64,000 nt of DNA from Obrimoposthia wandeli (taxonomy: Eukaryota). Under the pieces are notes generated by a model. That model saw only the letters and a program-made list of their open reading frames with translations. It was not told the DNA's origin and made no database searches. The DNA is taken from the NCBI GenBank assembly GCA_977020255.1, contig CDROCS010002422.1:124001-188000 (forward strand), in the 5' to 3' direction. Shown one piece after another: positions 1 to 44,928 of this stretch (the first letter of the stretch is position 1; the number at the start of each line of letters is the position of its first letter). The position numbers and the translations under genes are program-made.

Positions 1-125
1 GGCCTGATTTACTCGCGACTCAACGACGTTTAATCCCCGAGGCTCTGTGTGTCATGGAGCACGATAACCCTAGTGATGTTACGCGCTTTGCACGTGAATC
101 TATTCGTAATTTGCGGGAGATGTAA
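1..125 (+). CDS. 3' end of a sugar phosphate isomerase/epimerase (xylose-isomerase-like TIM barrel), cut by the window edge
   Basis: Frame from nt 3 reads PDLLATQRRLIPEALCVMEHDNPSDVTRFARESIRNLREM*, with TAA at 123-125. The EHDNPSD motif is typical of the C-terminus of this family. Not in the ORF track. Confidence 0.65.
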   Translation, partial: PDLLATQRRLIPEALCVMEHDNPSDVTRFARESIRNLREM

Positions 126-126
126 A

Positions 127-1260
127 GTGGATTCTCCTCTTCGTGTTGGCATTGTTGGTTGCGGTACTATTTCTGATTCTTATCTGCGCATGGCCAATTT
201 TTTCAAAGATTACCAAGTAATCGCCTGCGCTGATATCAATCCTGCCTCTGCGCAGAGCAGAGCTGATGAATTCAATATAGAAGCACGTAGTCTTGACGCG
301 CTTTTCAATGCTGATGACATCGACATTATTGTCAATTTAACCATCCCTAGTGCACATTTTGAAGTCTCTAGAGCAGCGCTAGTCGGCGGCAAGCATGTTT
401 ACTCAGAAAAACCTTATATTTTGCAGCTAGAAGAAGGAAAAATACTCGCAGAGCTGGCACAGCAAAAAGGATTACGCATTGGTTCAGCTCCCGACACTTT
501 CCTTGGAGGCAGCCACCAGCAAGCCCGCTCAATAATAGATAGCGGCGACATAGGAGAGATTAGCTCTGGCACGGTTTTCATTATGAACCATGGTATGGAA
601 AGCTGGCATCCAAACCCAGATTTTTTCTTTCAAGCAGGTGGCGGGCCTGTATTAGATTTGGGTCCTTACTACCTCAGCAATTTAGTGCAATTATTGGGAC
701 CTGTTAGCCATGTTAAAGCGCTGTCTAGTACCCCATCTGTGGAACGAACCATTGGCAATGGCGCACGCTGTGGTGAAAAAATAGCCGTCACCACGCCCAC
801 CACCATTCATGCTTTACTGCAATTTGAAAGCGGTGCGCTAATTAACTTCGGTGCAAGTTGGGATGTGTGGGCTCATGAACATAACCCTATTGAACTATAT
901 GGAAGTCTTGGCAGCCTCTACTTACCTGATCCCAATTTCTTTGGCGGTGAGGTTAAAGTAACGCAACACGCACAAGCAGTCGTTACAGCTGCTTGGCAAC
1001 ATCCATTTTCTATTATCAATGATCGAGATAAAGCGGGAGTTAGCCGTGCTAATTATCGCGGCGCGGGCCTCGCTGATATGGCATTAGCGATTAAAAATGG
1101 AACTGCTCATCGCTGTAACCAGGAGTTTGCCCTGCATATTATCGATGTACTAAACTGTATGCTTGACGCCGCAGAAAATGGCCATAACAGCGAAATATCA
1201 ACGCGCTGTGATCGCCCTATGCCCTTATCGATTGCGCAAGCTAGCAGCCTTATCGCTTAA
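127..1260 (+). CDS. Gfo/Idh/MocA family NAD(P)-dependent oxidoreductase
   Basis: Motifs VGIVGCGTIS, HVYSEKP and GPVLDLGPYY. The real start is probably GTG at 127, after GGGAGA and the upstream stop, not 49. Confidence 0.9.
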   Translation: MDSPLRVGIVGCGTISDSYLRMANFFKDYQVIACADINPASAQSRADEFNIEARSLDALFNADDIDIIVNLTIPSAHFEVSRAALVGGKHVYSEKPYILQLEEGKILAELAQQKGLRIGSAPDTFLGGSHQQARSIIDSGDIGEISSGTVFIMNHGMESWHPNPDFFFQAGGGPVLDLGPYYLSNLVQLLGPVSHVKALSSTPSVERTIGNGARCGEKIAVTTPTTIHALLQFESGALINFGASWDVWAHEHNPIELYGSLGSLYLPDPNFFGGEVKVTQHAQAVVTAAWQHPFSIINDRDKAGVSRANYRGAGLADMALAIKNGTAHRCNQEFALHIIDVLNCMLDAAENGHNSEISTRCDRPMPLSIAQASSLIA

Positions 1261-1270
1261 TGATAATTAA

Positions 1271-1291
1271 CTCCACAGCCCTGCTGTGGAG
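1271..1291. terminator. GC-rich hairpin between convergent genes
   Basis: ctccacagc-cct-gctgtggag, a 9-bp stem 10 nt after the Gfo stop, with no clear T-run. Confidence 0.5.
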
Positions 1292-1349
1292 GAGCCCTAC
1301 TGCTGATAGTACCGGAAAACTATTGCGCTCAAGAACTGGTCGTTGCTAA

Positions 1350-1377
1350 ATGACTCAACATTATCATGTTGAGTCAT
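1350..1377. terminator. Second hairpin between convergent genes
   Basis: atgactcaacat-tatc-atgttgagtcat, a perfect 12-bp stem. Confidence 0.45.
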
Positions 1378-1501
1378 CACTCTCATTCACATCAGCAATA
1401 CCCATAAACAACAAATCCTCAATAGGCGCTATATCAGCGCACGATAACAAACAGATCTATCGATAATTTATTGATAATTTATTCAAAGGTAAATCAAGTT
1501 T

Positions 1502-2500
1502 TTATATCGCTGCGGTTGTACCACGTAACTTTAACTCCACCGGTAAAGTGCTATTGGTAGGCTGTGCTTTTCCTGCCAGTAAATCTAATAGGCGCAGCAT
1601 AGCGGTTTCGCCAATCAACTGTCGCGGTTGATGCACGGTGGTTAGCTGTGGTGTACAATATTCACTAAATGGGATGTTATCGAAACCTACTACAGACAGC
1701 TGCTCAGGTACATCAATCCCCAGCTCACGGGCATGTCTTAACACCCCAATTGCCATTTCATCGTTATAACAAAAAATAGCGCTAGGGCGCTCTTTCAAGC
1801 GCAATAAATCGCCCGCCAGATCATAACCTGACTGTAGCGTATAATCGCCTTCACATATGAAATTTTGTGGCAGCGTTAATTGTACACTTTCCATGTAATT
1901 GGCCACGCCTTTCATGCGCGCCAGCGTAATCGCATTATTTGCATGACCGGTGATACAGGCTATTTTTTTATGACCCAATTTTACGAGTAACTCTACCACA
2001 CTGCGCGCACTGCTTTCGTTATCGATATGCACCCTTGGGATATCGCTATCCGCGTAATATTCACAGACCATCACAAAAGGTAATTTAGCTTGCTTGTCTG
2101 CATTAATTAACGCCGACAAAGGTAAATCTGCGGTTAACAACAACACGCCATCTGCCTGCTTGCTGTGTACTAAATCAAGATACTTTTGAGCGCGTTCGAC
2201 ATCGTGGTCCGCATCCCCCACTAAGACTTTATAGCCTTCACGGTGCGCTACCTTTTCGACACCCTTAATGATATCTGTAAAAAACGGGTTACTGATGTCA
2301 GGTAAGATGATCACTATTGTTTTAGACTGCTGAGTACGCAAACTACGTGCAATTGCATTGGGAGCATATCCAAGCTGCTCTGCTGCTAGCAATACCTTGT
2401 TGCGCGTTGGCTCTGTCACTTTTTCTGGGTTTGCCAGTGCACGCGACACTGTAGCAGTTGATACACCTGCTTGCTTTGCTATATCTTTAACTGTCGTCAT
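1502..2500 (-). CDS. LacI family transcriptional regulator (CytR-like)
   Basis: N-terminal HTH TVKDIAKQAGVSTATVSRAL, hinge YAPNAIARSL, and C-terminal VVGFDN/PQLTTVHQP. Confidence 0.95.
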   Translation of the reverse strand: MTTVKDIAKQAGVSTATVSRALANPEKVTEPTRNKVLLAAEQLGYAPNAIARSLRTQQSKTIVIILPDISNPFFTDIIKGVEKVAHREGYKVLVGDADHDVERAQKYLDLVHSKQADGVLLLTADLPLSALINADKQAKLPFVMVCEYYADSDIPRVHIDNESSARSVVELLVKLGHKKIACITGHANNAITLARMKGVANYMESVQLTLPQNFICEGDYTLQSGYDLAGDLLRLKERPSAIFCYNDEMAIGVLRHARELGIDVPEQLSVVGFDNIPFSEYCTPQLTTVHQPRQLIGETAMLRLLDLLAGKAQPTNSTLPVELKLRGTTAAI

Positions 2501-2719
2501 AAGCTTTTTTATAACTCGTTGATTACTATTTCAGGTGGTAACACTCTTACTAACACTGTGCGAAGCGCTAGATGGCAAGGTACTATAGCTGATCTCGACG
2601 ACTAGCTATAGTAGAGTCTAAGCTAGACAGACATTTTGAGTTACTGGGCTATAAAAAACACTGCTAAAGTCCATAATGCATTAGATATTAGATGCAATGT
2701 CTTGAGTGAAACTACTTAG

Positions 2720-3877
2720 TTAACCGACTATTTCATCCAGCGTTGTCCACTGACTATTATTTTGTGAAGATAGCACCACGGCTTCAACAAACTGCATGGC
2801 TGCAATGCCCTCTTCAATACCTGGAATCAGCGCTAACTCAGCGCCCGCTGTACCACCTTGCTTACGTAACAGTAACACTTGCGCTATATCGCTATACAAG
2901 TTGGCAAAGCCTTCTAAATAGCCTTCTGGGTGACCTGCTGGCGTGCGGCTCACCCGGTTCGCTATTTGTGTCACACCATCGCCTGCGCGTACCCGTTTTT
3001 GCGAGGGTTCTCCGTGGGGTTTAAACCAAAGGTGGTTCGGTTCCTCCTGCGACCATTCAATACTCGCTTTCTCACCGTAGATGCGAATTTTTAAGTCATT
3101 ATCATGCCCTACAGCAACTTGACTACACCACAGCATTCCCTTAACACCTTGCTCGTAACGCAGCATCACGTGCGCATTATCATCTAGGCGTCGCCCAGCT
3201 ACGAAAGCATCGATGTCAGCGCAGACAGACTGCAGCGTTAAACCTGATATAAATTGTGCCAAATTGATCGCATGCGTTCCTATATCACCAATGCTGCCAC
3301 CTAAGCCTGAGCGTAGCGGGTCTGTGCGCCACTGGGCTTGTTTGTTGCTTTTACTCTCTTCATTTTCACTCAACCAATCTTGCGCATATTCAACTTGTAT
3401 CAACCGCAACGTGCCTAATTCTCCATCGGCTACCAATGATTTTGCATAGCGCACTAAAGGATAACCCGTGTAGTTATGTGTAAGATAAAACCCTGTTTTT
3501 GTCTGCTCTATTTGCCGTTTAAGTTGCAATGCTTGTTGCACATTTAACGTCACAGGTTTATCGCAAATAACACAGATACCCTGCGCTAAAAATGCGCTAG
3601 CCACCGCAAAGTGCAGGTGATTAGGCGTCACTATTACCACCGCATCAATGCCGTCTGCACGCTTTGCTTCAGTCTGAGCCATCGCATTAAAATCTTCGTA
3701 ACTGCGCTCGCGATTGATACCGAGCAGGTCAGCAGAGCTATGCGTCCTAGCCTCATCTGAGGAAAAAGCCCCCGCTACCAGCTCAAAATGGTTATCTAAA
3801 CGTGCCGCTATACGATGTATTTCGCCGATAAATGCCCCTTCTCCACCACCGACCATGCCTAATCTAAGGACGCTCAT
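2720..3877 (-). CDS. Gfo/Idh/MocA family oxidoreductase
   Basis: Motifs RLGMVGGGEGAFIGEIHR, VICDKP and GSIGDIGTHA. Start overlaps the upstream stop by 1 nt. Confidence 0.9.
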   Translation of the reverse strand: MSVLRLGMVGGGEGAFIGEIHRIAARLDNHFELVAGAFSSDEARTHSSADLLGINRERSYEDFNAMAQTEAKRADGIDAVVIVTPNHLHFAVASAFLAQGICVICDKPVTLNVQQALQLKRQIEQTKTGFYLTHNYTGYPLVRYAKSLVADGELGTLRLIQVEYAQDWLSENEESKSNKQAQWRTDPLRSGLGGSIGDIGTHAINLAQFISGLTLQSVCADIDAFVAGRRLDDNAHVMLRYEQGVKGMLWCSQVAVGHDNDLKIRIYGEKASIEWSQEEPNHLWFKPHGEPSQKRVRAGDGVTQIANRVSRTPAGHPEGYLEGFANLYSDIAQVLLLRKQGGTAGAELALIPGIEEGIAAMQFVEAVVLSSQNNSQWTTLDEIVG

Positions 3878-4950
3878 TATCGTTCCTCCTGTGCCGCCAG
3901 TCCTAGCAGTATGCGATTGGCTGATGCATCCGTTTTAGTACTTGAAAAATCATCAAAAGCTTTATCTGTTATCTCTATAATGTGATCTTTAACAAATTGC
4001 GCACCTTCCTGGGCTCCTTGTTGCGGATGCTTAAGACAGCACTCCCACTCTACTACCGCCCACCCCTTGAACCCGTATTGACTCAATTTTGAAAAGATAC
4101 CGCCAAAATCTATTTGCCCGTCACCGAGTGAGCGAAAACGTGCCGCTCTATCTGCCCAAGCAGCATAACCACCGTAAACTCCTTGACTCGGCGTTGGATT
4201 GAACTCGGCATCTTTCACATGAAACATTTTAATACGTTGATGATAGCGGTCTATAAACCCTAAATAATCTAGCTGTTGCAGTAAGAAATGTGATGGGTCG
4301 TACAAAATATTAGCGCGGGGATGATTTCCAGTAGCCTCTAAAAATTTATCAAAACTGCCACCATCATGTAAATCTTCACCTGGATGTAATTCAAAGCACA
4401 GATCAACTCCACAGCGTTCACATTCATCTAGAATAGGCAGCCATTGGCTTGCTAACTCTGCAAAACCCATTTCTACTAATCCAGATGGGCGCTGCGGCCA
4501 AGGGTATAAATATGGCCACAATAGTGCCCCTGAAAAACTAGCCATTTCACTTAATGATAAGTTTTTGGATGCTTGCGCTGCCAAAAACAACTGCTCTTTC
4601 GCCCACGCTTGTCGAGCACTAGGATTGTTCTGTACATGCACAGGAGCAAAACTGTCAAACAGCTGATCATAAGCTGGGTGTACCGCGATTAATTGCCCTT
4701 GTAAATGTGTTGATAACTCAGTAATAACCAGCCCGTATTTAGCCAATGTTGCCTGAACTTGTGCACAGTATTCGAGATCTGTCGCTGCTTTTGCCAAATC
4801 GAATATTTTCGGGTTGGTGGTTGGCATTTGCACACCTTTATAACCTGCCTGCGCCGCCCAAGAACTGATACCATCTAAACTATTAAAAGGTGCTTTGTCG
4901 TCAATAAACTGAGCTAAAAATATCGCTGGGCCTTTTATCGTGTTCATCAA
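3877..4950 (-). CDS. Sugar phosphate isomerase/epimerase (IolE/AP-endonuclease-2 TIM barrel)
   Basis: Metal-ligand pattern FELHPGED, YDPSH, FHVKDAE and VVEWEC; N-terminal IKGPAIFLAQF family signature. Confidence 0.85.
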   Translation of the reverse strand: MMNTIKGPAIFLAQFIDDKAPFNSLDGISSWAAQAGYKGVQMPTTNPKIFDLAKAATDLEYCAQVQATLAKYGLVITELSTHLQGQLIAVHPAYDQLFDSFAPVHVQNNPSARQAWAKEQLFLAAQASKNLSLSEMASFSGALLWPYLYPWPQRPSGLVEMGFAELASQWLPILDECERCGVDLCFELHPGEDLHDGGSFDKFLEATGNHPRANILYDPSHFLLQQLDYLGFIDRYHQRIKMFHVKDAEFNPTPSQGVYGGYAAWADRAARFRSLGDGQIDFGGIFSKLSQYGFKGWAVVEWECCLKHPQQGAQEGAQFVKDHIIEITDKAFDDFSSTKTDASANRILLGLAAQEER

Positions 4951-5005
4951 TTATCCTCTGTTTTGCGTTCATTGAATGCTCGGTTATTAATTCAAAAGCA
5001 CTATT

Positions 5006-5019
5006 TGTAATCGATTACA
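5006..5019. promoter_or_regulatory. LacI-family operator of the sugar operon
   Basis: Perfect palindrome TGTAATCGATTACA fits the LacI-type TGNAANCGNTTNCA pattern. It lies just downstream of the predicted minus-strand promoter. Confidence 0.75.
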
Positions 5020-5025
5020 TTAGCA

Positions 5026-5054
5026 ATTTAAAACGACTGAAAAGACTAAGTCAA
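5026..5054 (-). promoter_or_regulatory. Sigma70-type promoter of the sugar operon
   Basis: Minus strand TTGACT-N17-TTAAAT. Confidence 0.5.
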
Positions 5055-5335
5055 CTTTTAACCAACAAAAGAGACAATTAGCACTTGAGATCACTAGATT
5101 AACCATATGCTCAGCCATATATTCGAACACTGGCTCTTTTTATGCGCTTATATTTTTAACACAAGCTCGGATTTTCAAGCATTAAATTGAGCACTCACTA
5201 TTTTTTTAGCACACTAATGAGGGGTTTTCCCTTATAAACCAGCCAAAACTACCTCTTTAGTTGTTGAATAATAAGGATTAAATAATTATTTTAAATTAAC
5301 TATTGACCAATTACTAAACAACTGGCTAATATATA

Positions 5336-5351
5336 TTGACCACTTGGTAAA
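5336..5351. promoter_or_regulatory. RutR/PydR-type operator upstream of the F420 operon
   Basis: TTGACCACTTGGTAAA has one mismatch to the RutR consensus TTGACCAnnTGGTCAA. It overlaps a putative -35 (TTGACC-N18-TAAAGT). A weaker copy, TTGACCAATTACTAAA, is at 5303-5318. Confidence 0.7.
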
Positions 5352-5425
5352 ACTTTTAGTAAAGTTAACGACCAATTGATCGCAATACACAACTATTAAA
5401 AAAATAACATTGTTGGATAGGTAAC

Positions 5426-6553
5426 ATGCTTACAAAAACACAAGCAGCCACACTACAAAGTGTGAGCGGTGATGAGTTACAAGCGCTGTGTGCAAACGCC
5501 AGTGAAGTACGTGAACAGCACTGGGGCAAAACAGTCACTTACTCGCGTAAGGTCTTTGTGCCTCTCACAAATATGTGCCGCGATACTTGTAGCTATTGTA
5601 CTTTTGTAAAACATCCCGATTCGCCGCAGTCATATATCATGACCCCTCAACAGGTGATGGATGTCGTAAATGACGGGCAAAAGATTGGCTGTAAAGAAGT
5701 GTTATTTAGCTTGGGAGAAAAACCTGAGCAGCGCTACCCACAAGTGCAAGCAAGCCTGACTAAAATGGGTTTTCTAAGCATGACAGACTATTTAGAAGAT
5801 ACCTGTCAAAAAGTAATCGAACAAAGCAGTATGCTACCTCATGTTAATGCCGGCACCTTGTCTCTAGAAGAAATACGCCGTTTAAAGCCCGTCAGTGCCA
5901 GTATGGGGATGATGTTAGAAACCGTTTCCAAACGCTTATTACTCAAGGGTAATGTACATTATGCCTGCCCTGATAAAGTACCTTTACAAAGACTGCGCAC
6001 ATTAGAGCGCGCAGGTCAGTTAGATGTGCCTTTCACGACAGGTATTTTAATTGGCATCGGTGAAACTTGGCTTGAAAGAGTTGAAAGCTTAATTGCCATC
6101 AATGAGATCCACCAGCAATACGGCCATATTCAAGAAGTGATAGTGCAAAACTTTTGCGCCAAAGAAGGCACTGCTATGGCGGGTGCTGCAGAGCCTGATT
6201 TAGATGACATGTTGCGCACGATTGCCGTCGCCAGATTAATTTTAGACCCTTCTATCAGCTTGCAAGCACCGCCAAATTTACAAGAGCGCTTTCACGCATA
6301 CTTAAACAGCGGTATCAATGACTTCGGCGGTATTTCACCCCTGACGATTGATCATATAAACCCTGAAAAAGCTTGGCCACAAATTTCACAACTGGCCAAA
6401 GCGAGTAACGATTGTGGTTATCAATTACAAGAACGCTTAGCGGTTTACCCCAAATATCAGCAATTCCCAGAACGCTATTTTGCCCAACAGATCGCTAGCA
6501 GAGTTCAAAGCATTGCCAGAGTAGATGGTTTAGCAAATCGACAGTGTTTGTAG
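5426..6553 (+). CDS. cofG: FO synthase subunit CofG (7,8-didemethyl-8-hydroxy-5-deazariboflavin synthase)
   Basis: Motifs VTYSRKVFVPLTNMCRDTCSYC (radical SAM CxxxCxxC), LPHVNAG, FTTGILIGIGE and GINDFGGISP. Confidence 0.95.
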   Translation: MLTKTQAATLQSVSGDELQALCANASEVREQHWGKTVTYSRKVFVPLTNMCRDTCSYCTFVKHPDSPQSYIMTPQQVMDVVNDGQKIGCKEVLFSLGEKPEQRYPQVQASLTKMGFLSMTDYLEDTCQKVIEQSSMLPHVNAGTLSLEEIRRLKPVSASMGMMLETVSKRLLLKGNVHYACPDKVPLQRLRTLERAGQLDVPFTTGILIGIGETWLERVESLIAINEIHQQYGHIQEVIVQNFCAKEGTAMAGAAEPDLDDMLRTIAVARLILDPSISLQAPPNLQERFHAYLNSGINDFGGISPLTIDHINPEKAWPQISQLAKASNDCGYQLQERLAVYPKYQQFPERYFAQQIASRVQSIARVDGLANRQCL

Positions 6554-6594
6554 ATTGTAGCTCCTAGCTTACAAACACCGCCACTACTTCGAAA

Positions 6595-7878
6595 ATGCAC
6601 AGTACAAGGAATAATATTTTGAATGCTCTAAACAACTTTCAAAAAAGCACCACTCAACTTAATGAAGCAGTCATTAATAGCTCAGTTCCTGCAGAGTTAG
6701 ATCTATCTAATATCAGTAGTGTGGTTGCTAACATATTAACTCGCGCCCTTAGCGGTGAAGAAATTAGTGCACAAGAAGGCACGCAGCTTTTTCAAAGTAC
6801 TGGCCAAGAGATCACCGCCATCGCCAAATGCGCCGATATTATTCGCCAGCGAACGGTTGGCAACCAAGCCAGCTTTGTCATTACCCGCAACATCAACTTC
6901 ACCAACATTTGTTATATGGGGTGTAAGTTCTGCGGTTTTTCAAAGAGTAAAAACGATCCAGATGCCGAGCTGCTTTCGATGCAAGAAATAGCGCAGCGCG
7001 CACAAGAAGCTTGGGATAGAGGCGCAACTGAAGTGTGTATTCAAGGCGGCATACATCCTGATTTGCCCGAAGATCACTACCGCAATATTTTAATCGCGAT
7101 TAAGCAACAAGTGCCTGATATGCATATTCACGCATTCTCTCCGTTTGAGATATTTTTTGGCGCACAAAATAGTAACATGAGCTATCGTGAGTTTATTCAA
7201 GACTTAATGGATCACGGCCTAGGTTCAATGCCGGGTACTGCCGCTGAAATTCTAGATGTAGAAATTCGCAAACAGCTCACCCGCGATAAGCTAACCACAC
7301 AGCAGTGGGTTGATATTATATCGACTGCACACCAATTGGGCTTGCCTACTACTGCCACCATTATGTACGGCCATATTGATTCACCTCATCACTGGGCTGC
7401 ACACATTGAGCTGCTGCGCAATATGCAAAAAGAGCACGGGGGTTTTACCGAATTTGTACCGCTAGGTTTTGTGCATTATGAATCACCTTTATATACCGAT
7501 CGCAAGAAACTCAAACTCGATGTGCGTCCAGGGCCCACCGCTAACGAAAACATTTTAATGCATGCCGTTTCTAGAATTATGCTCAGTGGATGGATAGATA
7601 ACATTCAAGCATCTTGGGTGAAATTAGGGCCTAACTATGCGGTACAAATGTTACGTGCAGGTGCTAATGATTTAGGTGGCACTTTAATGGATGAATCGAT
7701 AACGCGCTCATCAGGCGGCGTACACGGCGAAGAAATACTGCCCTTAGATATGGTGCAAATGATTGAAAAAAGCGGCTTAACGCCTTTTAGACGCAATACT
7801 CTATACGCACAATTAGAGCACTTCCCGCAAACGCAACAAGCTACACTTATCGCCTCTTGCGGCGGTGCTATTGCATGA
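6595..7878 (+). CDS. cofH: FO synthase subunit CofH
   Basis: Motifs RNINFTNICYMGCKFC, EVCIQGGIHP, SMPGTAAEIL, NIQASWVKLG and GANDLGGTLMDE. The exact start is uncertain. Confidence 0.95.
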   Translation: MHSTRNNILNALNNFQKSTTQLNEAVINSSVPAELDLSNISSVVANILTRALSGEEISAQEGTQLFQSTGQEITAIAKCADIIRQRTVGNQASFVITRNINFTNICYMGCKFCGFSKSKNDPDAELLSMQEIAQRAQEAWDRGATEVCIQGGIHPDLPEDHYRNILIAIKQQVPDMHIHAFSPFEIFFGAQNSNMSYREFIQDLMDHGLGSMPGTAAEILDVEIRKQLTRDKLTTQQWVDIISTAHQLGLPTTATIMYGHIDSPHHWAAHIELLRNMQKEHGGFTEFVPLGFVHYESPLYTDRKKLKLDVRPGPTANENILMHAVSRIMLSGWIDNIQASWVKLGPNYAVQMLRAGANDLGGTLMDESITRSSGGVHGEEILPLDMVQMIEKSGLTPFRRNTLYAQLEHFPQTQQATLIASCGGAIA

Positions 7879-8870
7879 GCCTATCAATACTACTGTTAGC
7901 AGGCGGTGTGGGCGGTGCAAAAATGGCCGAGGGGCTAATGCACAGTGATCACGCCCAAGGCTTAAGTATTTTGGGTAACATCAGCGATGATCAAGAAATT
8001 CATGGCTTGTGGGTATCACCCGATATCGACACTTTGACTTACACTTTAACTGATCGCATTGATACTGATAAAGGCTGGGGCTTAAAAGATGAGAGCAACC
8101 GTACTTTAGATGCACTAAAACTGCTGGGTGAAGATACTTGGATGTATTTAGGCGACCAAGATTTTGCCACCCATATCTACCGCACTCAGTTGCGTAAAAA
8201 AGGGCTGCGCCCCAGTATTATTGCCGCCGATATAGCTGCAAAATTTGGCTTAAAAACGCCTTTACTACTCCCTACTGATGACATCGTACAAACCCGTGTA
8301 AATACTGATCTAGGATGGCTAGATTTTCAAAGTTATTTTGTGCGCTATCAATGCCAGCCTGAAATTAGCGAAATTGCCTTTAAAGGCGCTGATACTGCTA
8401 AAGCCACACCAGAGGCACTGGCTGCAATCAGTGCTGCTGATGTCATTATCTTTGCCCCATCTAACCCTATTGTAAGCATAGGCGCCATTTTGGCGGTGCC
8501 GGGCATTCGCACAGCCATTGAAACGAGTAAGGCTTATAAAATGGCGGTTTCTGGGATTGTGGCCGGAAAAACAGTAAAAGGGCCTGCTGATAAAATGCTG
8601 CGCGCTTTAAATATTCCCTGTAACGCTTTAGGCGTAGCACAATGTTATCAAGATTTAATTGATGTGCTAGTGGTTGATAACTTAGATAACGCGCTTTGCC
8701 CCGCGATTGAAGCTTTAGGTATGGCCACTTACTGCACCGATACCATGATGCTTGATCGCTCAGATAAAGTGCGCTTAGCCAATCAACTAATTGCTTTTCA
8801 GCAAACGGCGGCTAACGACAGCCTTTGTACTGATATCTCTTCAACTAACAGCGAGCAGCCATCACTATGA
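7875..8870 (+). CDS. cofD: 2-phospho-L-lactate/phosphoenolpyruvate transferase CofD (FbiA)
   Basis: Motifs LAGGVGGAK, VSPDIDTLTYTL, LGDQDFATH and PSNPIVSIG. Start at 7875 through an ATGA overlap with the cofH stop. Confidence 0.95.
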   Translation: MSLSILLLAGGVGGAKMAEGLMHSDHAQGLSILGNISDDQEIHGLWVSPDIDTLTYTLTDRIDTDKGWGLKDESNRTLDALKLLGEDTWMYLGDQDFATHIYRTQLRKKGLRPSIIAADIAAKFGLKTPLLLPTDDIVQTRVNTDLGWLDFQSYFVRYQCQPEISEIAFKGADTAKATPEALAAISAADVIIFAPSNPIVSIGAILAVPGIRTAIETSKAYKMAVSGIVAGKTVKGPADKMLRALNIPCNALGVAQCYQDLIDVLVVDNLDNALCPAIEALGMATYCTDTMMLDRSDKVRLANQLIAFQQTAANDSLCTDISSTNSEQPSL

Positions 8871-9505
8871 GTTTGTGCATCGTTATTCCGATGAAAGATC
8901 CGCAGTGTTCCAAGCAACGTTTAAGTGATGTGCTTGATCCACATGAAAGGCAAAACATTGCGCTTAATTTGTTACATAAAACTCTACATTTTTTAACCCA
9001 GCACTTTCCACAGATCAGCGTATTAATCGTTACGCCAGCGCCTGTTATTGCAAAAATTGCTGAACAGTACAAAGTGAATGTATTGATAGAACAATGCGCT
9101 AAAGGCTTAAATAACGCGATTGCACAAGCCGCTCAACACTGTGAAACACTTGGTTTTACCAGCCAGCTAGTGTTACCGGCCGATATCATCGATTTAGATT
9201 ATGCTGAGTTTAATCAATTGCTGAATATGAAAAGAGCTCACCAGTCAGTGATTATCTGCCCCGCGGAAGATGGCGGTACTAATGCGCTGTTAACCACCCC
9301 ACCGCAAGCTATTGAATTTAGTTATGGTGTAAATTCTAGCTCTAAGCATTGGCGTAATGCACAACAAAACAATCTTCACTGCCAACTGCTCACATTGCCA
9401 AACTTAGCCTTAGATTTAGATACCGCACAAGATTTACAACTACTCAATGCAGATGTCATTAATCAACTCACACATAACAACAATCACTATCAGCTCCAAC
9501 GGTAG
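8867..9505 (+). CDS. cofC: 2-phospho-L-lactate/PEP guanylyltransferase CofC (FbiD)
   Basis: Motifs VIPMK..KQRL, GLNNA, LPADI, DGGTNAL and LDLDTAQDL. ATGA overlap with cofD. Confidence 0.92.
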   Translation: MSLCIVIPMKDPQCSKQRLSDVLDPHERQNIALNLLHKTLHFLTQHFPQISVLIVTPAPVIAKIAEQYKVNVLIEQCAKGLNNAIAQAAQHCETLGFTSQLVLPADIIDLDYAEFNQLLNMKRAHQSVIICPAEDGGTNALLTTPPQAIEFSYGVNSSSKHWRNAQQNNLHCQLLTLPNLALDLDTAQDLQLLNADVINQLTHNNNHYQLQR

Positions 9506-9555
9506 CCTTTTAAAAAATAAAGAGCTGATATGAATGATTCAAAGAGGAAATTTAA

Positions 9556-10335
9556 GTGAGTAACCAAGCAGTACAAATTATGGCCGTGACCGGAATCCCC
9601 GACATCGTACCAGGGGATGATTTAGCCACACAAATTAACCAAGCCATGCAAGCACAACAATTATCACTAGAAGATGGCGACATCCTCGTTATTGCTCACA
9701 AAGTTGTCTCTAAAGCGGAGGGACAAATTGTTAACTTGGCCGATGTAGAGCCTTCTTTAGAAGCATTAGAGCTGGCTGAGAAACTAAATAAAGATCCTGC
9801 GAAAGTTGAAACTGTATTAAGAGAATCATCACGCATTGTTAAAACCAGTAAGCGCGAAGATCAAAATGAAGGGCTGATTATTGCACAACATCGCTTAGGC
9901 TTCATCTGCGCAAATGCCGCGGTTGATGAGTCAAACGTTGATCAGCCAAATCACGTTATTTTACTGCCAAAAGATCCTGATAAGAGCGCGCGTGAAATAT
10001 GCGCGGCTTTGGAGAAAATAAGCGCTAAAAAACTCGGTGTGGTAATCACCGACACCTTTGGCAGACCTTGGCGCATGGGCCTTGTAAACGTTGCTATTGG
10101 TTTAGCTAACGTGCCGAGCAAAGTAGATATGGCCGGTCAAAATGACGCTTATGGTCGTGAACTCAAAGTAACAGTGCCAGCCCTGGCTGATGAACTCGCT
10201 GCTGCCAGTGGCTTATTAATGAGTAAAGAAGGAAAGAAGCCAGTCATTTTATTTAGAGGCGTTGATTGGAGCCGCACATCCAGCAGCGCACAAGACTTAA
10301 TTCGCCCAGCGCGCGAAGATTTATTCAGACTATAA
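9556..10335 (+). CDS. cofE: Coenzyme F420-0:L-glutamate ligase CofE, without a nitroreductase domain
   Basis: Motifs GIPDIVPGDDL, AHKVVSKAEG, ANAAVDESN, ITDTFGRPWRMG and ADELAAA. GTG start with AGAGGA RBS; 259 aa. Confidence 0.95.
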   Translation: MSNQAVQIMAVTGIPDIVPGDDLATQINQAMQAQQLSLEDGDILVIAHKVVSKAEGQIVNLADVEPSLEALELAEKLNKDPAKVETVLRESSRIVKTSKREDQNEGLIIAQHRLGFICANAAVDESNVDQPNHVILLPKDPDKSAREICAALEKISAKKLGVVITDTFGRPWRMGLVNVAIGLANVPSKVDMAGQNDAYGRELKVTVPALADELAAASGLLMSKEGKKPVILFRGVDWSRTSSSAQDLIRPAREDLFRL

Positions 10336-10434
10336 GTTAAAAAGTTAGAACATTTAATACATGTAACTCGTAATTTCTTTACAAACTACATCAACCTTGT
10401 GCTGCATTTGAGCACTAAAAAAGGAAAAACAATA

Positions 10435-11118
10435 ATGAAAATAGCTATTCTTGGTGGAACGGGACCGCAAGGTAAAGGATTAGCATTACGCTTTGCCATG
10501 GCCGGCGTTGATGTTGTATTAGGCTCTAGAGATAGCGGTCGCGCCACTGAAATTGCCGCTGAACTCAACGGACAAATTGCAGCGCTCGATAGCGTCAGCA
10601 TGGCGGGTAATATTTCAGGGGCTGATAATAACCAAGCTGTCATTAGTGCTGATCAAATGGTCATTTTAGCTGTACCTTACTCTGCGCATAATGCCACTTT
10701 AACGGCTATTAAAGGCGATCTTAGCGGCAAGATTTTAATTGATATAGTTGTGCCATTAAAAGATGGAGACCCTAAAGCGGTCGATATGCCTATTGAAGGC
10801 TCCGCCACTGAAGCGGCGCAAGCACTACTGGGACCAGATATCCCGGTGGTTGGTGCACTGCACAATGTTTCAGCGACAACGCTCAATCAACTAGCACAAA
10901 AAATTAACTGTGACATCTTAATATGTGGCAATAATTTAGAAGCTAAAAACCAAGTAATTGGCTTGGTTGAGTTGTTACAAGTACAAGCTTACAACGTTGG
11001 CCCTGCCGTTAATGCACGTTGTGTTGAAGCGATTACGCCCATGTTGATTCGTTTGAATATTTCCAAAAAAGTACCTTTCACTCATGCGGGCATCAAGATT
11101 TGCCCGCCTGAACATTAG
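10435..11118 (+). CDS. npdG: NADPH-dependent F420 reductase (F420H2:NADP+ oxidoreductase, Fno)
   Basis: Motifs [38 protein letters not shown] and [14 protein letters not shown] at 10435 follows an AAGGA RBS. Confidence 0.93.
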
Positions 11119-11248
11119 AATTATTTGATCAGCTAAGAAGAACAACAGATATAACGATGAATTTTGTCTCGGAGCTTTCGGCTGATCTTACAGATCAGTT
11201 CGATGTCTCCTCACTATAAAAAAAAGAGAGTTATCTCAGGAGTTAACT

Positions 11249-12253
11249 ATGGATTTTGGTATTACGTTTAAAGGCTTTGTTGAACCACAAAGAGCGAGAA
11301 ATTTAGTTAGACAAGCAGAAGAAGCTGGATTCACCCACTGCTGGTTCTACGATTCACACGTACTGTGGCGCGAGTGCTACCCTGCTATTGCTATGTGCAT
11401 GGAACACACCACTAAAATGAAGTTCGGCCCTTGTGTTACTAACCCTAACTCTCGTGATTGGTCAATTGCAGCAAGTCTTTTTGGTAGCTTAGCAAAACAG
11501 AGTAATGGTCGTTTTGTGGTAGGTTTAGGCCGCGGCGATAGCGCGATGCGTGTAATGGGCAAAAAGCCTGCTAACTTAGCGCGAGTAGCTGAGTTCACAC
11601 AAAAAGTTAAAGCCATGGTACGTGGTGAAGAAGTAACTTACGGCGAAAGCCCTGAGCCGGTTAAATTCCCTTGGGCTGATGGTTATGAACTACCAGTACA
11701 CATCGGCGCATACGGACCTAAAGCACTTAAAACGGCTGGGGAAGTTGGCGATGGTGTTATTTTACAAATTGCCGATCCTTCATTAGTTAAATGGTTTGCT
11801 GAGCAAGCAATCTCTGCGGGCAAAGAAGCGGGGCGTGATATGTCTAACTTCCAAGTTATTGCCTCAGCACCTGCTTACATGGGCGATATGGATAAATGTC
11901 GTGAGGCTACTCGTTGGTTCCCTGCGATGGTGGGTAACCACGTTGCTGATATCGTTGAAAAATACGGAGCACACTCCGGCCTAGTGCCTGAAAGTTTGAC
12001 TAACTACATTGAGCAACGTAAAGGTTATGACTATTCAAAGCATGGTCAAAGCGACAACCCTTATCTTGATTTCATTACCAATGACATCATTGACAGCTTC
12101 AGTGTTTTAGGTGAGCCAGATGCGCACATTGCTAAAATTAAAGAACTGGAAGCTGTGGGCACTACACAGTTTAATATCTATTTAGACAGTGGTGATGAAG
12201 AGCAAATTATTGCTGACTACGCGAACAAGATCATCCCTGCTTTTACAAAATAA
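11249..12253 (+). CDS. F420-dependent LLM-class oxidoreductase (TIGR03842/CPS_4043-like, Mer-related)
   Basis: Motifs WFYDSHVLWRE, GPCVTNP, GLGRGDSAMRVMG and AYGPKAL..AGEVGDGVILQIADP. AGGAG RBS; sits directly after the F420 genes. The family was assigned by recognition, not by an HMM run. Confidence 0.85.
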   Translation: MDFGITFKGFVEPQRARNLVRQAEEAGFTHCWFYDSHVLWRECYPAIAMCMEHTTKMKFGPCVTNPNSRDWSIAASLFGSLAKQSNGRFVVGLGRGDSAMRVMGKKPANLARVAEFTQKVKAMVRGEEVTYGESPEPVKFPWADGYELPVHIGAYGPKALKTAGEVGDGVILQIADPSLVKWFAEQAISAGKEAGRDMSNFQVIASAPAYMGDMDKCREATRWFPAMVGNHVADIVEKYGAHSGLVPESLTNYIEQRKGYDYSKHGQSDNPYLDFITNDIIDSFSVLGEPDAHIAKIKELEAVGTTQFNIYLDSGDEEQIIADYANKIIPAFTK

Positions 12254-12317
12254 TTGACTCGCACTAACCCCCGGTCAATTAAAACACCGAGGGTTTTGCA
12301 ATAACTGAGCAAAGATT

Positions 12318-13547
12318 ATGCAAAATATAAAAATTAATGAGCAGCGCCTTTGGGACAGCCTCATGCAGATGGGTGAAATTGGCGGCACTGAAAAAGGTGG
12401 TTGCTGTCGTTTAGCGCTCACTGATTTAGATAAGCAAGGCCGTGACTTATTTGTAAAATGGTGCGAAGAAGCAGGCTGTACCGTAAGCGTCGATAAAATG
12501 GGTAACATTTTTGCTCGTCGTGCGGGAACAGATGATAGCCTTCCTCCAGTAGTAATGGGCAGTCACTTAGATACGCAGCCAACAGGCGGCAAGTTTGATG
12601 GCGTTTATGGGGTGCTAAGTGGCCTTGAAGTTATACGCTCACTTAACGATCATAACATCCAAACTAAACACCCTATTGAAGCTTCAGTATGGACCAACGA
12701 AGAGGGATCTCGCTTCCCACCTGCCATGGTTGCCTCTGGTGTTTTCGCCGGCGTCTTCGATTTAGAATATGGTTTATCACGTGCCGACTTAGACGGTAAA
12801 ACCATGGGCGAAGAACTCAAACGCATCGGTTATGACGGCGCATTAGAGATGGGTAACCGTGAGTTCAAAGCCTTCTTTGAAGCGCATATTGAACAGGGCC
12901 CTATTTTAGAGAACGAAGAAAAGACTATCGGTGTGGTAACAGATGCCCAAGGTCAGCGTTGGTATGAAGTTAAATTTACTGGCCAAGAATCTCATGCAGG
13001 CCCGACTCCTATGGCAACACGTAAAGATGCTTTAGTAGGTGCCGCACGCATGATCGATAAAGTAAACCAAATTGGTTTAGGTAATGCACCATTAGCCTGC
13101 TCTACTGTTGGCTTATTACAAGTATTTCCTAACTCGCGTAATGTTATCCCTGGTGAAGTGTTTTTCACTGTCGATTTCAGACATCCTAATGATGCTGTAC
13201 TGTCTAAAATGGATGCAGAACTTAGAGCTTTTGCCGAGCAAACAGCAACTGAGCTAGGTTTAGAGATGGAATTTGAAGAAATTTGGTATTCACCGCCGGT
13301 TCCTTTCAACAAATCCTGTGTCGATTCCGTGCGTGAAGCGGCAGAAGCTTCAGGCTACTCACATCGCGATATTGTCAGCGGTGCTGGTCACGATGCTTGC
13401 TACATTTCACGTGTAGCACCCACTGCTATGGTGTTTGTTCCTTGTGAAAATGGTATCAGCCACAATGAATCTGAAAATGCAGACCCGGCTGATTTAGCCG
13501 CAGGTTGCGATGTATTGATTCAAGCAGTTTTACTGCAAGCAAACTAG
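12318..13547 (+). CDS. M20 Zn-dependent N-carbamoyl-amino-acid hydrolase / beta-ureidopropionase (PydC/HyuC/AmaB-like)
   Basis: Motifs GSHLDTQPTGGKFDG, WTNEEGSRF, EAHIEQGP, HAGPTPM and SGAGHDA. Confidence 0.9.
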   Translation: MQNIKINEQRLWDSLMQMGEIGGTEKGGCCRLALTDLDKQGRDLFVKWCEEAGCTVSVDKMGNIFARRAGTDDSLPPVVMGSHLDTQPTGGKFDGVYGVLSGLEVIRSLNDHNIQTKHPIEASVWTNEEGSRFPPAMVASGVFAGVFDLEYGLSRADLDGKTMGEELKRIGYDGALEMGNREFKAFFEAHIEQGPILENEEKTIGVVTDAQGQRWYEVKFTGQESHAGPTPMATRKDALVGAARMIDKVNQIGLGNAPLACSTVGLLQVFPNSRNVIPGEVFFTVDFRHPNDAVLSKMDAELRAFAEQTATELGLEMEFEEIWYSPPVPFNKSCVDSVREAAEASGYSHRDIVSGAGHDACYISRVAPTAMVFVPCENGISHNESENADPADLAAGCDVLIQAVLLQAN

Positions 13548-13562
13548 TCTAATAAACAATAT

Positions 13563-13590
13563 GCCTTACATTACTGTAAGGCTATTTTGT
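13563..13590. terminator. Intrinsic terminator ending the F420/LLM/hydrolase transcript
   Basis: gccttaca-ttac-tgtaaggc followed by tattttgt. Confidence 0.6.
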
Positions 13591-13674: not shown

Positions 13675-14775
13675 TTAGTAGCGGCTAACGGTTTTTTTAA
13701 ACTCCAAAGACAACTGATCAAGATAATAGCTGACCTGTTCACTTTCAGCTTCCATAGTGTCTAGATGCTTAGCCAAACCTACTAGGTCATTTTGCTGGCC
13801 ACATTTAATCGCCGCTCTACCTGCGTTATGCACCATTTCATGGGGCTTAGCTATTTTTTTAAACGCTGCAAAGTGACTATACTTTTTCGCGCCATCGCCT
13901 TTTGCATACCAAATCCCCATTCGACACTCACTATGCTTATTAGGTAACTCTGCAAAGTTTTGGCTATCAACTAAGTTATATATATTACTTTTCCAAACGA
14001 CGTGATCTAGTTTTACCGTATCTAAAAAGGCTTTTATAGAGGTAAAATCGATCACTGCTTGCATGTTTTGAGAGCTAGTTAATACTGAATTGACCACTTG
14101 ATCTATCTGCTGTGATGATACAGATACTTCAGCCGCGCTATTCTTGTTTTCTAAAATTGAATCTTTGATGCTCTCAGTTTGCGCTATTACTTGTAGCACT
14201 AGTTTTTCAATACCAGCGCTTGCTTCATACGCTTTTCCTGCCAGTGCACGTACTTCATCCGCTACTACAGAGAACCCTCTACCTGCCTCTCCCGCTCTTG
14301 CTGCTTCTATCGCAGCATTAAGTGCCAATAAGTTAGTCTGATCTGAAATAGATTGAATCGATGAAACCAGATTATTTATAGAGTGTACTGAACTGTTAAG
14401 CACACTCACTGACTCTTCGCTGTCATCCGCTAAGCGATTTATATCGCTCGCTCTGGTTGCCAATCTAGCGAGCGCTTCTCGTGTTTGCATAAAGATTTCA
14501 TCTAGCTGATGCAATTTTTCCTGCTCAATAACTAAATCTTCAGCGCTTTCACTTAAACCATTACGAATGCTATTGAGCATTGCACTGCCTTTTAATTGGC
14601 TAGAGAAAATGGTTGATTGTTCGTGTAATGCGTTTTTTTGTTGCGTTAACTCATCAACTTCGTTTTTCCATTGGTGGTTTAAAAGCGCCACATCTTCGCT
14701 ATGCTTATTACGTTCATCTATTAGCTGCTGTTTTAATGACTCAATTTCTTTATGTGCTTTGCTTTGAAAAAACAT
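13675..14775 (-). CDS. Soluble methyl-accepting chemotaxis protein with a C-terminal CZB zinc-binding domain
   Basis: Signalling core [34 protein letters not shown] ligands in [17 protein letters not shown] and PHEMVH. No transmembrane segment. Confidence 0.92.
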
Positions 14776-14991: not shown

Positions 14992-15214
14992 ATTTAGTTT
15001 ATGCATTGTTATTAATCAAGCAGGCTTCTTTACACACAAATACTATTAATTTAATGACCGGATACAGTATTAACCGATAGGTAAATTTGAAGTAATGAAG
15101 CAGAGTGAGTTTTAATCTTATTCAAAGAAAACAACAATTGTAGCAATTCGCGATACTATACATTTTTTGCTATTAACTTAAAATAAATATGCTGGCTTAT
15201 TTGATACACAAAGT

Positions 15215-15376: not shown

Positions 15377-15515
15377 GAGACCTTTGCACAATTACTGCAC
15401 TCAGTGATACGGCGTTAAAAACAAGCTCAAAATCCTCATTTATAGGCATAAACTCCGGTTTTTCGCTTGTTTTTGCCTTGTCTCACTGTCGCTCGCTACT
15501 TTGTGCAAAGGTCTC
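15377..15515 (+). mobile_element. MITE family B, copy B1 (139 bp)
   Basis: Perfect 15-bp TIR GAGACCTTTGCACAA/TTGTGCAAAGGTCTC and a 5-bp TSD aaagt. Identical to 40889-41027. Confidence 0.93.
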
Positions 15516-15786
15516 AAAGTATAAAACTGGTTAGGTAAATGAAGAATCATAATGATAAAAGCATAACTAAAGTAACGAAGATTTAAACCTAGCTTGAAAT
15601 CGCTTAATATCAGCTTTGGTAGGGAGCTATCGGCCTTGACCGATCGTAGTGAGAAGGAACTGATTTAACAGCATTTTTCAGCTTTCATAGCTAATAATGC
15701 GCTATTTACGAGGAAGACGGAGCTATAGCCAGATTCTGATTTCTCACAGAAAATGAGTATTCAGCTCACCAACTTCCTCATAACAT

Positions 15787-34504: not shown

Positions 34505-34520
34505 TTTACCGAATGGTAAA
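34505..34520. promoter_or_regulatory. RutR/PydR-type operator upstream of the nitrilase-NCS1-hydA operon
   Basis: TTTACCGAATGGTAAA, a perfect TTTACC-N4-GGTAAA palindrome, immediately after a putative TTGCGA-N17-TAATAT promoter. Confidence 0.62.
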
Positions 34521-34921
34521 AAATAATTCTAACAACTTACTCACTACAATTTACGCTCATATAAGATTGATCAGAGCCGTTTCTTGTAGATAGGGGAATG
34601 CTTAATGCACGCATACCAAAGCAGTTTTATATATCTTTTCGTTACACAAAAGTTACTGATGAGTTTTCAAAGAGCTCTTCTACGCATTCAATTTCTTTCG
34701 TTACAATTATTTTTTCACTACACCTTGTTTAATAAAAAAATAAAATTCTATCACTTAAATCTTCCTGTAAAAGCGATGTCAGCCACATCACGTTCGACAC
34801 TTGTGTACTAAAATTCGGTTTAGACTGAGGGATTTCAGCGCTCAAGCGCAGCTTTCACTCATCTATACAACCGCACTTTTTATAGCGCTGTCGACACCAG
34901 GATTTAATCAGAGGCAAAGTA

Positions 34922-35794
34922 ATGAATAAACTCAAATGCGGCTTGATACAAATGTCACTCAAGGGCAGTACCAGCGAATCAACTGATTCTATTAGAGATA
35001 AAATGATTGACGCACATATTCCTCTTATTCAGGAAGCTGCAGATCAAGGGGTCCAAGTACTTTGCTTCCAAGAAGTTTTCACCACGCCGTATTTTTGCCC
35101 AAGCCAAGATAAGAAATGGTATGCAAGTGCTGAGAAAATTCCTGGCGGCCACACAGTCACTTTAATGCAAGAGCAAGCAAAGAAGCACAATATGGTCATT
35201 GTGGTACCTATCTATGAAGAGGATTTACCTGGCGTCTTTTACAATACCGCTGCGGTAATTGATGCCGATGGAAGCTACTTAGGTAAATATCGCAAATCAC
35301 ATATTCCCGATACAGCACCTGGCTTTTGGGAGAAGCTTTACTTCAAACCCGGTAATACAGGCTATCCCGTCTTTGATACCAAGTACTGTAAGTTAGGGGT
35401 TTATATTTGCTATGACCGCCATTTCCCTGAAGGCTGGCGCGCACTGGCACTCAATGGCGCTGAATATATTGTTAACCCCTCTGCTACTGTAATGGGTAAA
35501 AGTAAGTATTTATGGGAGCTCGAACAACCAGCCTCTGCCGCGGCTAACGGCGTATTTATCGGCGCGATAAACCGTGTAGGTAGAGAACAACCTTGGGATA
35601 CTCAAATGGGTGAATTCTATGGCTCTAGCTATATCGTGAACCCCTTGGGCCAAATTGAGGCACAAGCTAGTGCCGATCAAGATGAGTTGTTAGTGCACCA
35701 AATCGATTTAGATATGATCAAAGAAGTACGTACAGGCTGGCAGTTCTTTCGTGATCGCCGCCCAGAAACTTATGACGATTTAACCCGTCCTTAA
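34922..35794 (+). CDS. Nitrilase-fold beta-ureidopropionase (N-carbamoyl-beta-alanine amidohydrolase)-like hydrolase
   Basis: Triad in CFQEVF, YRKSHIP and ICYDRHFPEGWR; also FFRDRRPE. First gene of an operon with NCS1 and hydA. Confidence 0.85.
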   Translation: MNKLKCGLIQMSLKGSTSESTDSIRDKMIDAHIPLIQEAADQGVQVLCFQEVFTTPYFCPSQDKKWYASAEKIPGGHTVTLMQEQAKKHNMVIVVPIYEEDLPGVFYNTAAVIDADGSYLGKYRKSHIPDTAPGFWEKLYFKPGNTGYPVFDTKYCKLGVYICYDRHFPEGWRALALNGAEYIVNPSATVMGKSKYLWELEQPASAAANGVFIGAINRVGREQPWDTQMGEFYGSSYIVNPLGQIEAQASADQDELLVHQIDLDMIKEVRTGWQFFRDRRPETYDDLTRP

Positions 35795-37430: not shown

Positions 37431-38885
<1,455 letters not shown>

Positions 38886-40888: not shown

Positions 40889-41027
40889 GAGACCTTTGCA
40901 CAATTACTGCACTCAGTGATACGGCGTTAAAAACAAGCTCAAAATCCTCATTTATAGGCATAAACTCCGGTTTTTCGCTTGTTTTTGCCTTGTCTCACTG
41001 TCGCTCGCTACTTTGTGCAAAGGTCTC
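40889..41027 (+). mobile_element. MITE family B, copy B2 (139 bp)
   Basis: Identical to B1, with a 15-bp TIR and a 5-bp TSD ataat. Confidence 0.93.
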
Positions 41028-41069
41028 ATAATAAGTTTTATTGATATTTATTATAATAAAATAGCATAT

Positions 41070-44701: not shown

Positions 44702-44928
44702 TACAGCTATGAATTTCTAATGAAACATCAGCATAACTTCTGCTTTTAATAATGCGCCTTTTAAAATCGACTCTATATGCTTATTTACATCAACAATGCC
44801 CATACAAAGAGGCACAATAGCTTCGCCATGCTGGCGGTTATTTTCTCGTTTTAATGGCTCACTACGTTATTCAGGACTTTCATAAACGAACAATTTTTAG
44901 CTTAATTATCAAAAAAAACAAGGAAAAA

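Follow-up and report, generated by a model that had tools for sequence, protein, structure and literature searches.

Tandem RutR-type operator boxes upstream of an F420 biosynthesis operon and their likely role in uracil-dependent control

RutR of E. coli is a TetR-family regulator that controls pyrimidine catabolism. It has a YcdC-type C-terminal domain in which uracil is stacked by a pair of tryptophans (W77 and W167) and further contacted by Q171, Y97 and Q179' (PMC10891134). The physiological effector is uracil and not thymine. A RutR dimer protects about 30 bp of DNA, which is contacted by the residues K51, L55, Y56 and K61; their substitution lowered the affinity 14- to 70-fold (PMC2952853). 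The operator of RutR, the RUT box, is known from rutA-rutR and carAB P1 and is a 16-bp palindrome with the core GACCAnnTGGT. Mutagenesis in E. coli showed that a G to A exchange at position +3 is tolerated and that a G to C exchange at +4 in both halves costs about 3.7-fold. The rutA-rutR operator is bound with a KD of 8.6 nM (PMC2952853) and, as read in the E. coli sequence (L081), has three mismatches to the consensus. The RutR regulons of 196 proteobacterial genomes (Leyn et al. 2016, PMC5343134; RegPrecise) contain pyd, rut, xdh and transport genes and a GTP cyclohydrolase II homologue named 'ribA2'. A further known arrangement is that of tetO1 and tetO2, which are adjacent palindromic operators over a core promoter. 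Each of them is bound by one dimer of a TetR-family protein, and the ligand relieves the repression.

Why Proteobacteria synthesise F420 was described as an open question in a 2021 review (PMC8498797). In the literature that we searched, no paper was found on F420 together with RutR, and the papers that joined F420 with dihydrouracil, with thymine and uracil catabolism or with dihydropyrimidinase dealt with unrelated subjects. Nothing was found there on TIGR03842 and CPS_4043. The supplementary table of PMC5343134, including Table S3, does not contain F420, cof or luciferase-like genes.

The locus described here lies in a stretch of 64 kb, which we call the window and compared with 80 cofG loci of related genomes. 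It shares with E. coli the type of operator, and the regulators encoded in the relatives share the TetR family, the YcdC-type domain, the tryptophan pair, the glutamine and tyrosine contacts and the link to pyrimidine catabolism. The differences are that the target in E. coli is rutA-G and here a cofactor-biosynthesis operon, that two tandem operators are placed on the core promoter, and that position 6 of the operator is A/T and not C/G. In addition, the regulators of the relatives are only about 40-50% identical to RutR with a score below the equivalog level, and RutA and RutB are absent from all loci (0/80). With the regulons of Leyn et al. (PMC5343134) the system has in common the reductive pathway (there pydA, pydB, pydC and pydX), the pyrimidine permeases, tsx and taxon-specific changes of the motif. 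However, neither pydA nor pydX is found in the window or the 80 loci, and cof-fno-LLM (LLM, luciferase-like) occupies their place in the regulon. It resembles tetO1/tetO2 in having two adjacent palindromes over core promoter elements. From these it differs in ligand, in operator sequence and in how the genes are arranged, and the regulator is not transcribed divergently from the operators. The operator type is already known; new against the literature searched are the target, the promoter with two operators and the F420-dependent pyrimidine pathway that is implied.

Two conserved boxes on the predicted cofG promoter

A preliminary description of the window had reported a strong RutR-type box 74 nt before cofG and a weaker copy further upstream. 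Both were confirmed when the sequence was read (Table 1). The start codon of cofG is at 5426, and the two boxes lie within the 475-nt gap that separates it from a xylose-isomerase-like gene on the minus strand (3877-4950). The 16-bp palindrome TTGACCAnnTGGTCAA, which is one criterion for a RUT box, was met with one mismatch in the strong box (box 2) and three in the weak box (box 1). When the window was scanned with TTGACCANNTGGTCAA, allowing up to 3 mismatches, 9 matches were obtained; shuffled sequences gave 2.63 on average and never more than 7. The best match of the entire window was box 2. We then scored the sites with a weight matrix that was trained only on sites from the genomes of relatives, excluding the window's own sites. 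Box 2 reached 23.4 bits and a further box at 34505 reached 22.5 bits, with maxima of 8-17.5 in the shuffled window. Box 1 scored 13.4 bits, which taken alone is not significant and lies at the level of chance. The bases at positions 3 to 5, which are critical by mutagenesis, are intact in both halves of box 2 (ACC and GGT). In this clade, box 1 has a degenerate right half, which deviates at +3 and +4, and a left half without deviation there. The preliminary description had to be refined in that the consensus of the boxes in these loci is TTKACCAnnTGGTAAA and not TGGTCAA.

Table 1. Position of the boxes, promoter elements and genes in the window and of boxes in related loci
Feature	Position	Strand	Remarks
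Synteny breakpoint	5265-5293		DNA homology with relatives begins here, just upstream of box 1
Operator box 1, weak	5303-5318		TTGACCAATTACTAAA; 3 mismatches to the E. coli RutR consensus
Predicted -35 hexamer TTGACC	5303-5308	+	left half of box 1
Predicted -10 hexamer TAATAT	5327-5332	+	promoter scan; 18 nt after TTGACC of box 1
Operator box 2, strong, RutR-type	5336-5351		TTGACCACTTGGTAAA; 1 mismatch (+6 C>A) to the E. coli RutR consensus
cofG, cofH, cofD, cofC, cofE, fno, LLM, M20 operon	5426-13547	+	Pfam, NCBIfam; gaps of at most 130 nt
fno, NADPH:F420 reductase	within 5426-13547	+	NCBIfam npdG
F420-dependent LLM oxidoreductase (luciferase-like)	11249-12253	+	TIGR03842, 504.7 bits (cutoff 295)
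M20 carbamoylase-type amidohydrolase	12318-13547	+	Pfam
Hairpin with T-runs on both strands	13563-13582		just past the M20 stop codon
Second strong box	34505-34520		TTTACCGAATGGTAAA; upstream of the CN-hydrolase, NCS1 and dihydropyrimidinase genes
CN-hydrolase, beta-ureidopropionase-like	34922-35794	+	Pfam
NCS1 permease	35894-37366	+	Pfam
Dihydropyrimidinase	37437-38885	+	Pfam; above the NCBIfam TIGR02033 cutoff
Box before cofG	most loci
Box before rutR	L015, L017, L020, L057, L069
Box before the M20 gene, with or without dihydropyrimidinase	L014, L055, L057, L020, L069
Box before pydC-NCS1	L008, L009		equivalent to the 34505 box of the window
Box before NCS1 and a LysR/aminotransferase pair	L019
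Box before aldehyde dehydrogenase	L038

Other candidates in the cofG upstream region were rejected. A third box at about 5368-5383 (CGACCAATTGATCG) had a low matrix score and recurred in the relatives only as a partial copy in L001. A match at 5099-5114 with 3 mismatches and 7.4 bits lies in a non-conserved part and was treated as chance. For a structured RNA in the cofG leader, the Rfam search gave only matches at the level of chance.

The conservation of the motif was followed in the 80 loci, which were collected by a CofG search with one genome per species and have CofG identities of 58% to 97%. They come from Oceanospirillaceae/Nitrincolaceae-like bacteria, Colwellia, Balneatrix, Amphritea, Marinomonas, Rhodobacteraceae, Cohaesibacter and other Hyphomicrobiales. 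These loci are related to one another and hence are not independent samples. One contig (L076) is labelled Nocardioides marinus, and its CofG identity and gene order fit the Leisingera loci (L078, L047), so that it is likely a contaminant or mislabelled. The boxes were counted over the 78 gamma- and alphaproteobacterial loci that have enough upstream DNA. A box with at most one mismatch to TTKACCNNNNGGTMAA was present between -300 and +60 of cofG in 61/78 loci, with 0.008 per locus expected from the background of the same loci. The unmodified E. coli consensus was found near cofG in 36 of the 78 loci with up to one mismatch and in 52 with up to two (expected 0.002 and 0.006, respectively). All 22 gammaproteobacterial loci have a box upstream of cofG, usually in two copies that are 31-33 nt apart. 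In the alphaproteobacterial loci the boxes are only about 30 nt away from the start codon, and perfect matches to the E. coli consensus occur in three of them (L043, L058 and L059).

When the window and nine relatives were aligned, the mean pairwise identity in the ten genomes was 92% for box 1, 94% for box 2, 78% for the spacer and 43% for the flanks, and both boxes fall inside one conserved block of 65 nt. Box 2 was found in all close relatives. Box 1 has the same position and a near-identical sequence in six of the relatives, and it is identical in sequence and position in L003, L005, L006, L008 and L009. The boxes at 5303, 5336 and 34505 are intact, and each differs by one base from L001, the relative with 97% CofG identity. 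These results show the sequence and the conservation of the boxes upstream of orthologous cof operons, which the preliminary description had proposed to check. Strain variants were seen in the contigs of run X1 at 5263 (G>A), 5357 (T>C) and 5359 (G>A) and not inside the boxes.

The preliminary description had placed the strong box over a plausible -35 hexamer, which the comparison with the relatives corrects. More than 20 gammaproteobacterial loci share one layout, with TTGACC invariably as the left half of box 1, TAnnAT 18 nt further on, and box 2 beginning 2-4 nt past the TAnnAT. The start of transcription is accordingly predicted near 5339, inside box 2, for which no start-site data are available. 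An alternative promoter with its -35 in box 2 and the -10 hexamer TAAAGT (5360-5365) had an equal score in a simple scan and remains possible, although the relatives do not conserve its -10. Because the layout of box 1 and TAATAT is conserved and the TAAAGT is not, we assign the -35 to box 1 and the predicted start site to box 2. The centres of the boxes are 33 bp apart, corresponding to about three helical turns, and two dimers would thus be located on one face of the DNA. Given this spacing and the roughly 30 bp protected per dimer in E. coli, two dimers would blanket the whole core promoter. Both statements are inferred, without start-site or binding data.

A RutR-like regulator in the relatives and its absence from the window

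The E. coli K-12 RutR sequence was taken from L081 and used as a tblastn query against the loci. A TetR-type homologue is encoded in 34 loci with 38-54% identity (E 1e-35 to 1e-51). Its gene immediately precedes cofG in 14 gammaproteobacterial loci, L001 among them, and is found at the end of the cof operon in many alphaproteobacteria, showing that rutR is linked to these operons. At least 120 homologues have both the TetR_N domain (PF00440) and the YcdC (RutR) C-terminal domain (PF08362). Among the NCBIfam families, RutR was the best for the relatives' regulator with 187 bits and the next family had 39 bits. The equivalog cutoffs of TIGR03613 (187 vs 368 bits) and NF011584 (175 vs 230 bits) were missed, and therefore the regulator was filed as RutR-like (PF08362 family) and not as a certified equivalog. 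The closest solved structure is E. coli RutR itself (6Z1B, 3LOC and 4JYK; E 4e-46), followed by another TetR protein at 1e-9.

The residues that contact uracil in E. coli, W77, Y97, W167, Q171 and Q179, are invariant in 25/25 aligned full-length homologues. None of the 16 gammaproteobacterial homologues has an exchange at K51, L55, Y56 or K61 of the recognition helix (numbering of PMC2952853). The DNA-contacting K51 (Lys52) is a threonine in six alphaproteobacterial homologues (L029, L063, L067, L070, L071 and L075). In five of these six loci the box before cofG is missing or divergent (TTTACCAGATAGTCAA and TTGACCTGTAGCTAAA are examples), and the box of L029 matches well. This may be a co-variation of protein and operator. 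No box was observed before rutR itself in L001, L002, L003, L008 and L085, so that autoregulation is not indicated among these close relatives.

In the window, no TetR-family gene was detected by Pfam scans of all open reading frames of at least 100 amino acids or by tblastn with E. coli RutR, confirming the preliminary description, which had noted the lack of a rutR or pydR gene. The RutR orthologue that was to be looked for in the genome was thus found in CP093399.1 (L007), a complete genome, and in 34 of the related loci but not in the window, to which the search of this genome was confined. The gene is missing because the synteny with the relatives breaks at about 5265. Upstream of this point the window had zero matches to any of the 80 related loci; where the relatives have rutR or other genes, the window has an unrelated cluster of the sugar type. 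The cluster in 1-5264 includes two GFO/IDH/MocA oxidoreductases, a LacI regulator and a xylose-isomerase-like TIM protein, and was apparently placed beside the cof promoter by a rearrangement. Contigs of the public run X1 (5060-5322 and 5293-5748) span the junction and do not indicate an obvious chimeric join. Run X1 may be the source sample, and this support is then not independent.

In CP093399.1 both boxes precede cofG and the RutR orthologue is encoded about 670 kb away. There, rutR adjoins a gene of the proline-racemase family, which is its left neighbour also in L001 and L082. An unlinked rutR thus has a precedent. Since the boxes are intact in our case, we argue that the regulator is still present in the genome; this is an inference, as only the window was available. 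The nearest RutR-like contigs, L082 and L083, belong to L001-like genomes and have no sequence in common with the window.

The cof operon and the genes that share the box

The order cofGHDCE-fno-LLM-M20 of the window recurs in most loci. The LLM oxidoreductase has Mer (1Z69) as its relative in the PDB. For the M20 protein, the N-carbamoyl-beta-alanine amidohydrolase 8C46 (E 6e-146) is among the nearest relatives with a solved structure. The hairpin that follows the operon is likely its end, as inferred from the sequence. The region of 30-39 kb contains, besides the genes behind the second strong box, those of an aldehyde dehydrogenase, a class-III aminotransferase and a LysR regulator.

Throughout the 1.3 Mb of the loci, sites with at least 16 bits are nearly all intergenic and adjoin cofG, rutR, M20, dihydropyrimidinase, NCS1, pydC or beta-alanine genes (Table 1). 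The gene order often links the pyrimidine genes with the cof operon. In Colwellia, the aminotransferase, LysR, NCS1 and dihydropyrimidinase genes are followed by the boxes and then by cofG through M20. The LLM gene is present in 61 of the 80 loci, the M20 gene in 28 and dihydropyrimidinase in 17. The content of the regulon is thereby shown, and the association with genes of pyrimidine catabolism, a further criterion for a RUT box, is met by the 34505 box and by the loci with rutR, M20, dihydropyrimidinase and NCS1. Homologues of E. coli PreT/PreA (PydX, PydA) were found neither in the window nor in any of the 80 loci at E 1e-5. As these two are absent and the other genes are present, the neighbourhoods encode all steps of the reductive pathway except the first. 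For this missing step, the F420 enzyme under the same control suggests itself as the candidate, which is an inference.

Some further observations were made on the genes around the boxes. In Motiliproteus, the operon includes a GTP cyclohydrolase II gene (L014:17150-17770) downstream of LLM, and two boxes and M20 come after it; the product of this gene would supply the pyrimidine precursor of the deazaflavin. In Colwellia, a gene for a Tsx-type nucleoside channel (L018:8776-9504) lies between dihydropyrimidinase and the boxes preceding cofG. In the window, about 400 nt (34521-34921) separate the 34505 box from the start codon of the CN-hydrolase, and promoter-like and terminator-like sites were not found on the plus strand of this segment by a simple scan. 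A weaker box at 15070-15085 (TTAACCGATAGGTAAA) scored 14.1 bits, within the range of the shuffles. It is about 295 nt upstream of a minus-strand gene for a chemoreceptor with a CZB domain (13675-14775) that the relatives do not have. Either this box is due to chance or the chemoreceptor has been recruited into the regulon; both are possible. An intergenic repeat of about 130 nt was noticed at 15386-15516, 40898-41029 and 44728-44790 of the window and, in relatives, between fno and the LLM gene (L002:15623-15754 and L007:15706-15868). It possibly represents a REP- or MITE-type repeat of the lineage.

Control by uracil and the role of F420

We propose that the tandem pair of RutR-type operators represses the F420 operon until uracil is present. 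We regard this as likely, and the binding, the repression and the response to uracil are inferred. According to this proposal, the two 16-bp palindromes would be tandem operators for a TetR-family repressor orthologous to RutR, and they would sit on the sigma-70 promoter of cofGHDCE-fno-LLM-M20. In the absence of pyrimidine, the repressor would block RNA polymerase. Uracil, bound in the conserved C-terminal pocket, would release it, and the cell would then induce F420 synthesis, Fno, the LLM enzyme and the carbamoylase-type amidohydrolase jointly with the pyrimidine genes behind the 34505 box. That the F420 operon carries a RutR-type operator, as the preliminary description had claimed, is supported by the counts in the cofG loci, by the linked RutR homologues and by the content of the regulon. 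Its further claim that the boxes are evidence for a function of F420 in pyrimidine catabolism is largely supported by the comparative data. It had also named uracil or thymine as the releasing ligand, of which the uracil part held; thymine is not the physiological effector in E. coli (PMC2952853). The induction of F420 synthesis by pyrimidines remains an inference, as there are no expression data and none of the RNA runs contains this DNA.

Three other explanations were considered. The boxes could be read by a RutR-family paralogue with another ligand, for example thymine, dihydrouracil or a metabolite of the purine pathway, and uracil would then have no control. In favour of this are the scores of the regulator below the NCBIfam RutR equivalog cutoffs, the different base at operator position 6 (TGGTAAA vs TGGTCAA) and the second copy, rutR2, that the published regulons include in some genomes. 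However, the five uracil contacts do not vary among the homologues, and the co-regulated genes to which a name can be given all function in pyrimidine uptake or reductive catabolism. We therefore consider the paralogue unlikely. Even less probable is that the regulator was lost in the upstream rearrangement, with the boxes remaining as relics and the operon being constitutive. The window indeed lacks rutR, and the synteny is broken exactly upstream of the boxes. Against a loss stand the two boxes and the 34505 box, which are intact and each only one base away from L001, the complete genomes with an unlinked rutR that retain the boxes, and the contigs of the sample, whose variants at 5263, 5357 and 5359 never fall within the boxes.

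The conserved block could also be nothing more than a strong promoter without a dedicated repressor, with the likeness to RutR resulting from the -35-like TTGACC. This hexamer is only one base off TTGACA, and a -35-like hexamer opens both boxes. Yet the right halves TGGTAAA complete palindromes and are conserved as well as the left halves, and box 2 often begins with TTTACC, which is a poor -35. The palindrome also recurs in other promoter contexts before rutR, M20 and pydC, and in alphaproteobacteria, so that this explanation is all but ruled out. The repression by a RutR-type regulator that responds to uracil remains our preferred reading.

If the reading is correct, the RutR regulon gains a cofactor-biosynthesis operon, and a substrate is predicted for the uncharacterised TIGR03842 family of F420 enzymes. 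The shared operator with dihydropyrimidinase, carbamoylase and permease, together with the lack of PydA nearby, offers a testable answer to why these bacteria make the cofactor: F420 would serve pyrimidine catabolism and be inducible by uracil. A bolder reading, which in our judgement may as easily be wrong as right, is that in marine gamma- and alphaproteobacteria F420 is produced only when needed, controlled by a RutR repressor that senses uracil, and drives an as yet undescribed opening step of reductive pyrimidine breakdown. In this step, F420H2 would serve the TIGR03842 LLM enzyme as the reductant for uracil or thymine and would be regenerated by Fno with NADPH. Together the two enzymes would take the place of the dihydropyrimidine dehydrogenase PydA/PydX. 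If this is true, a physiological role in Proteobacteria would be given to F420 for the first time.
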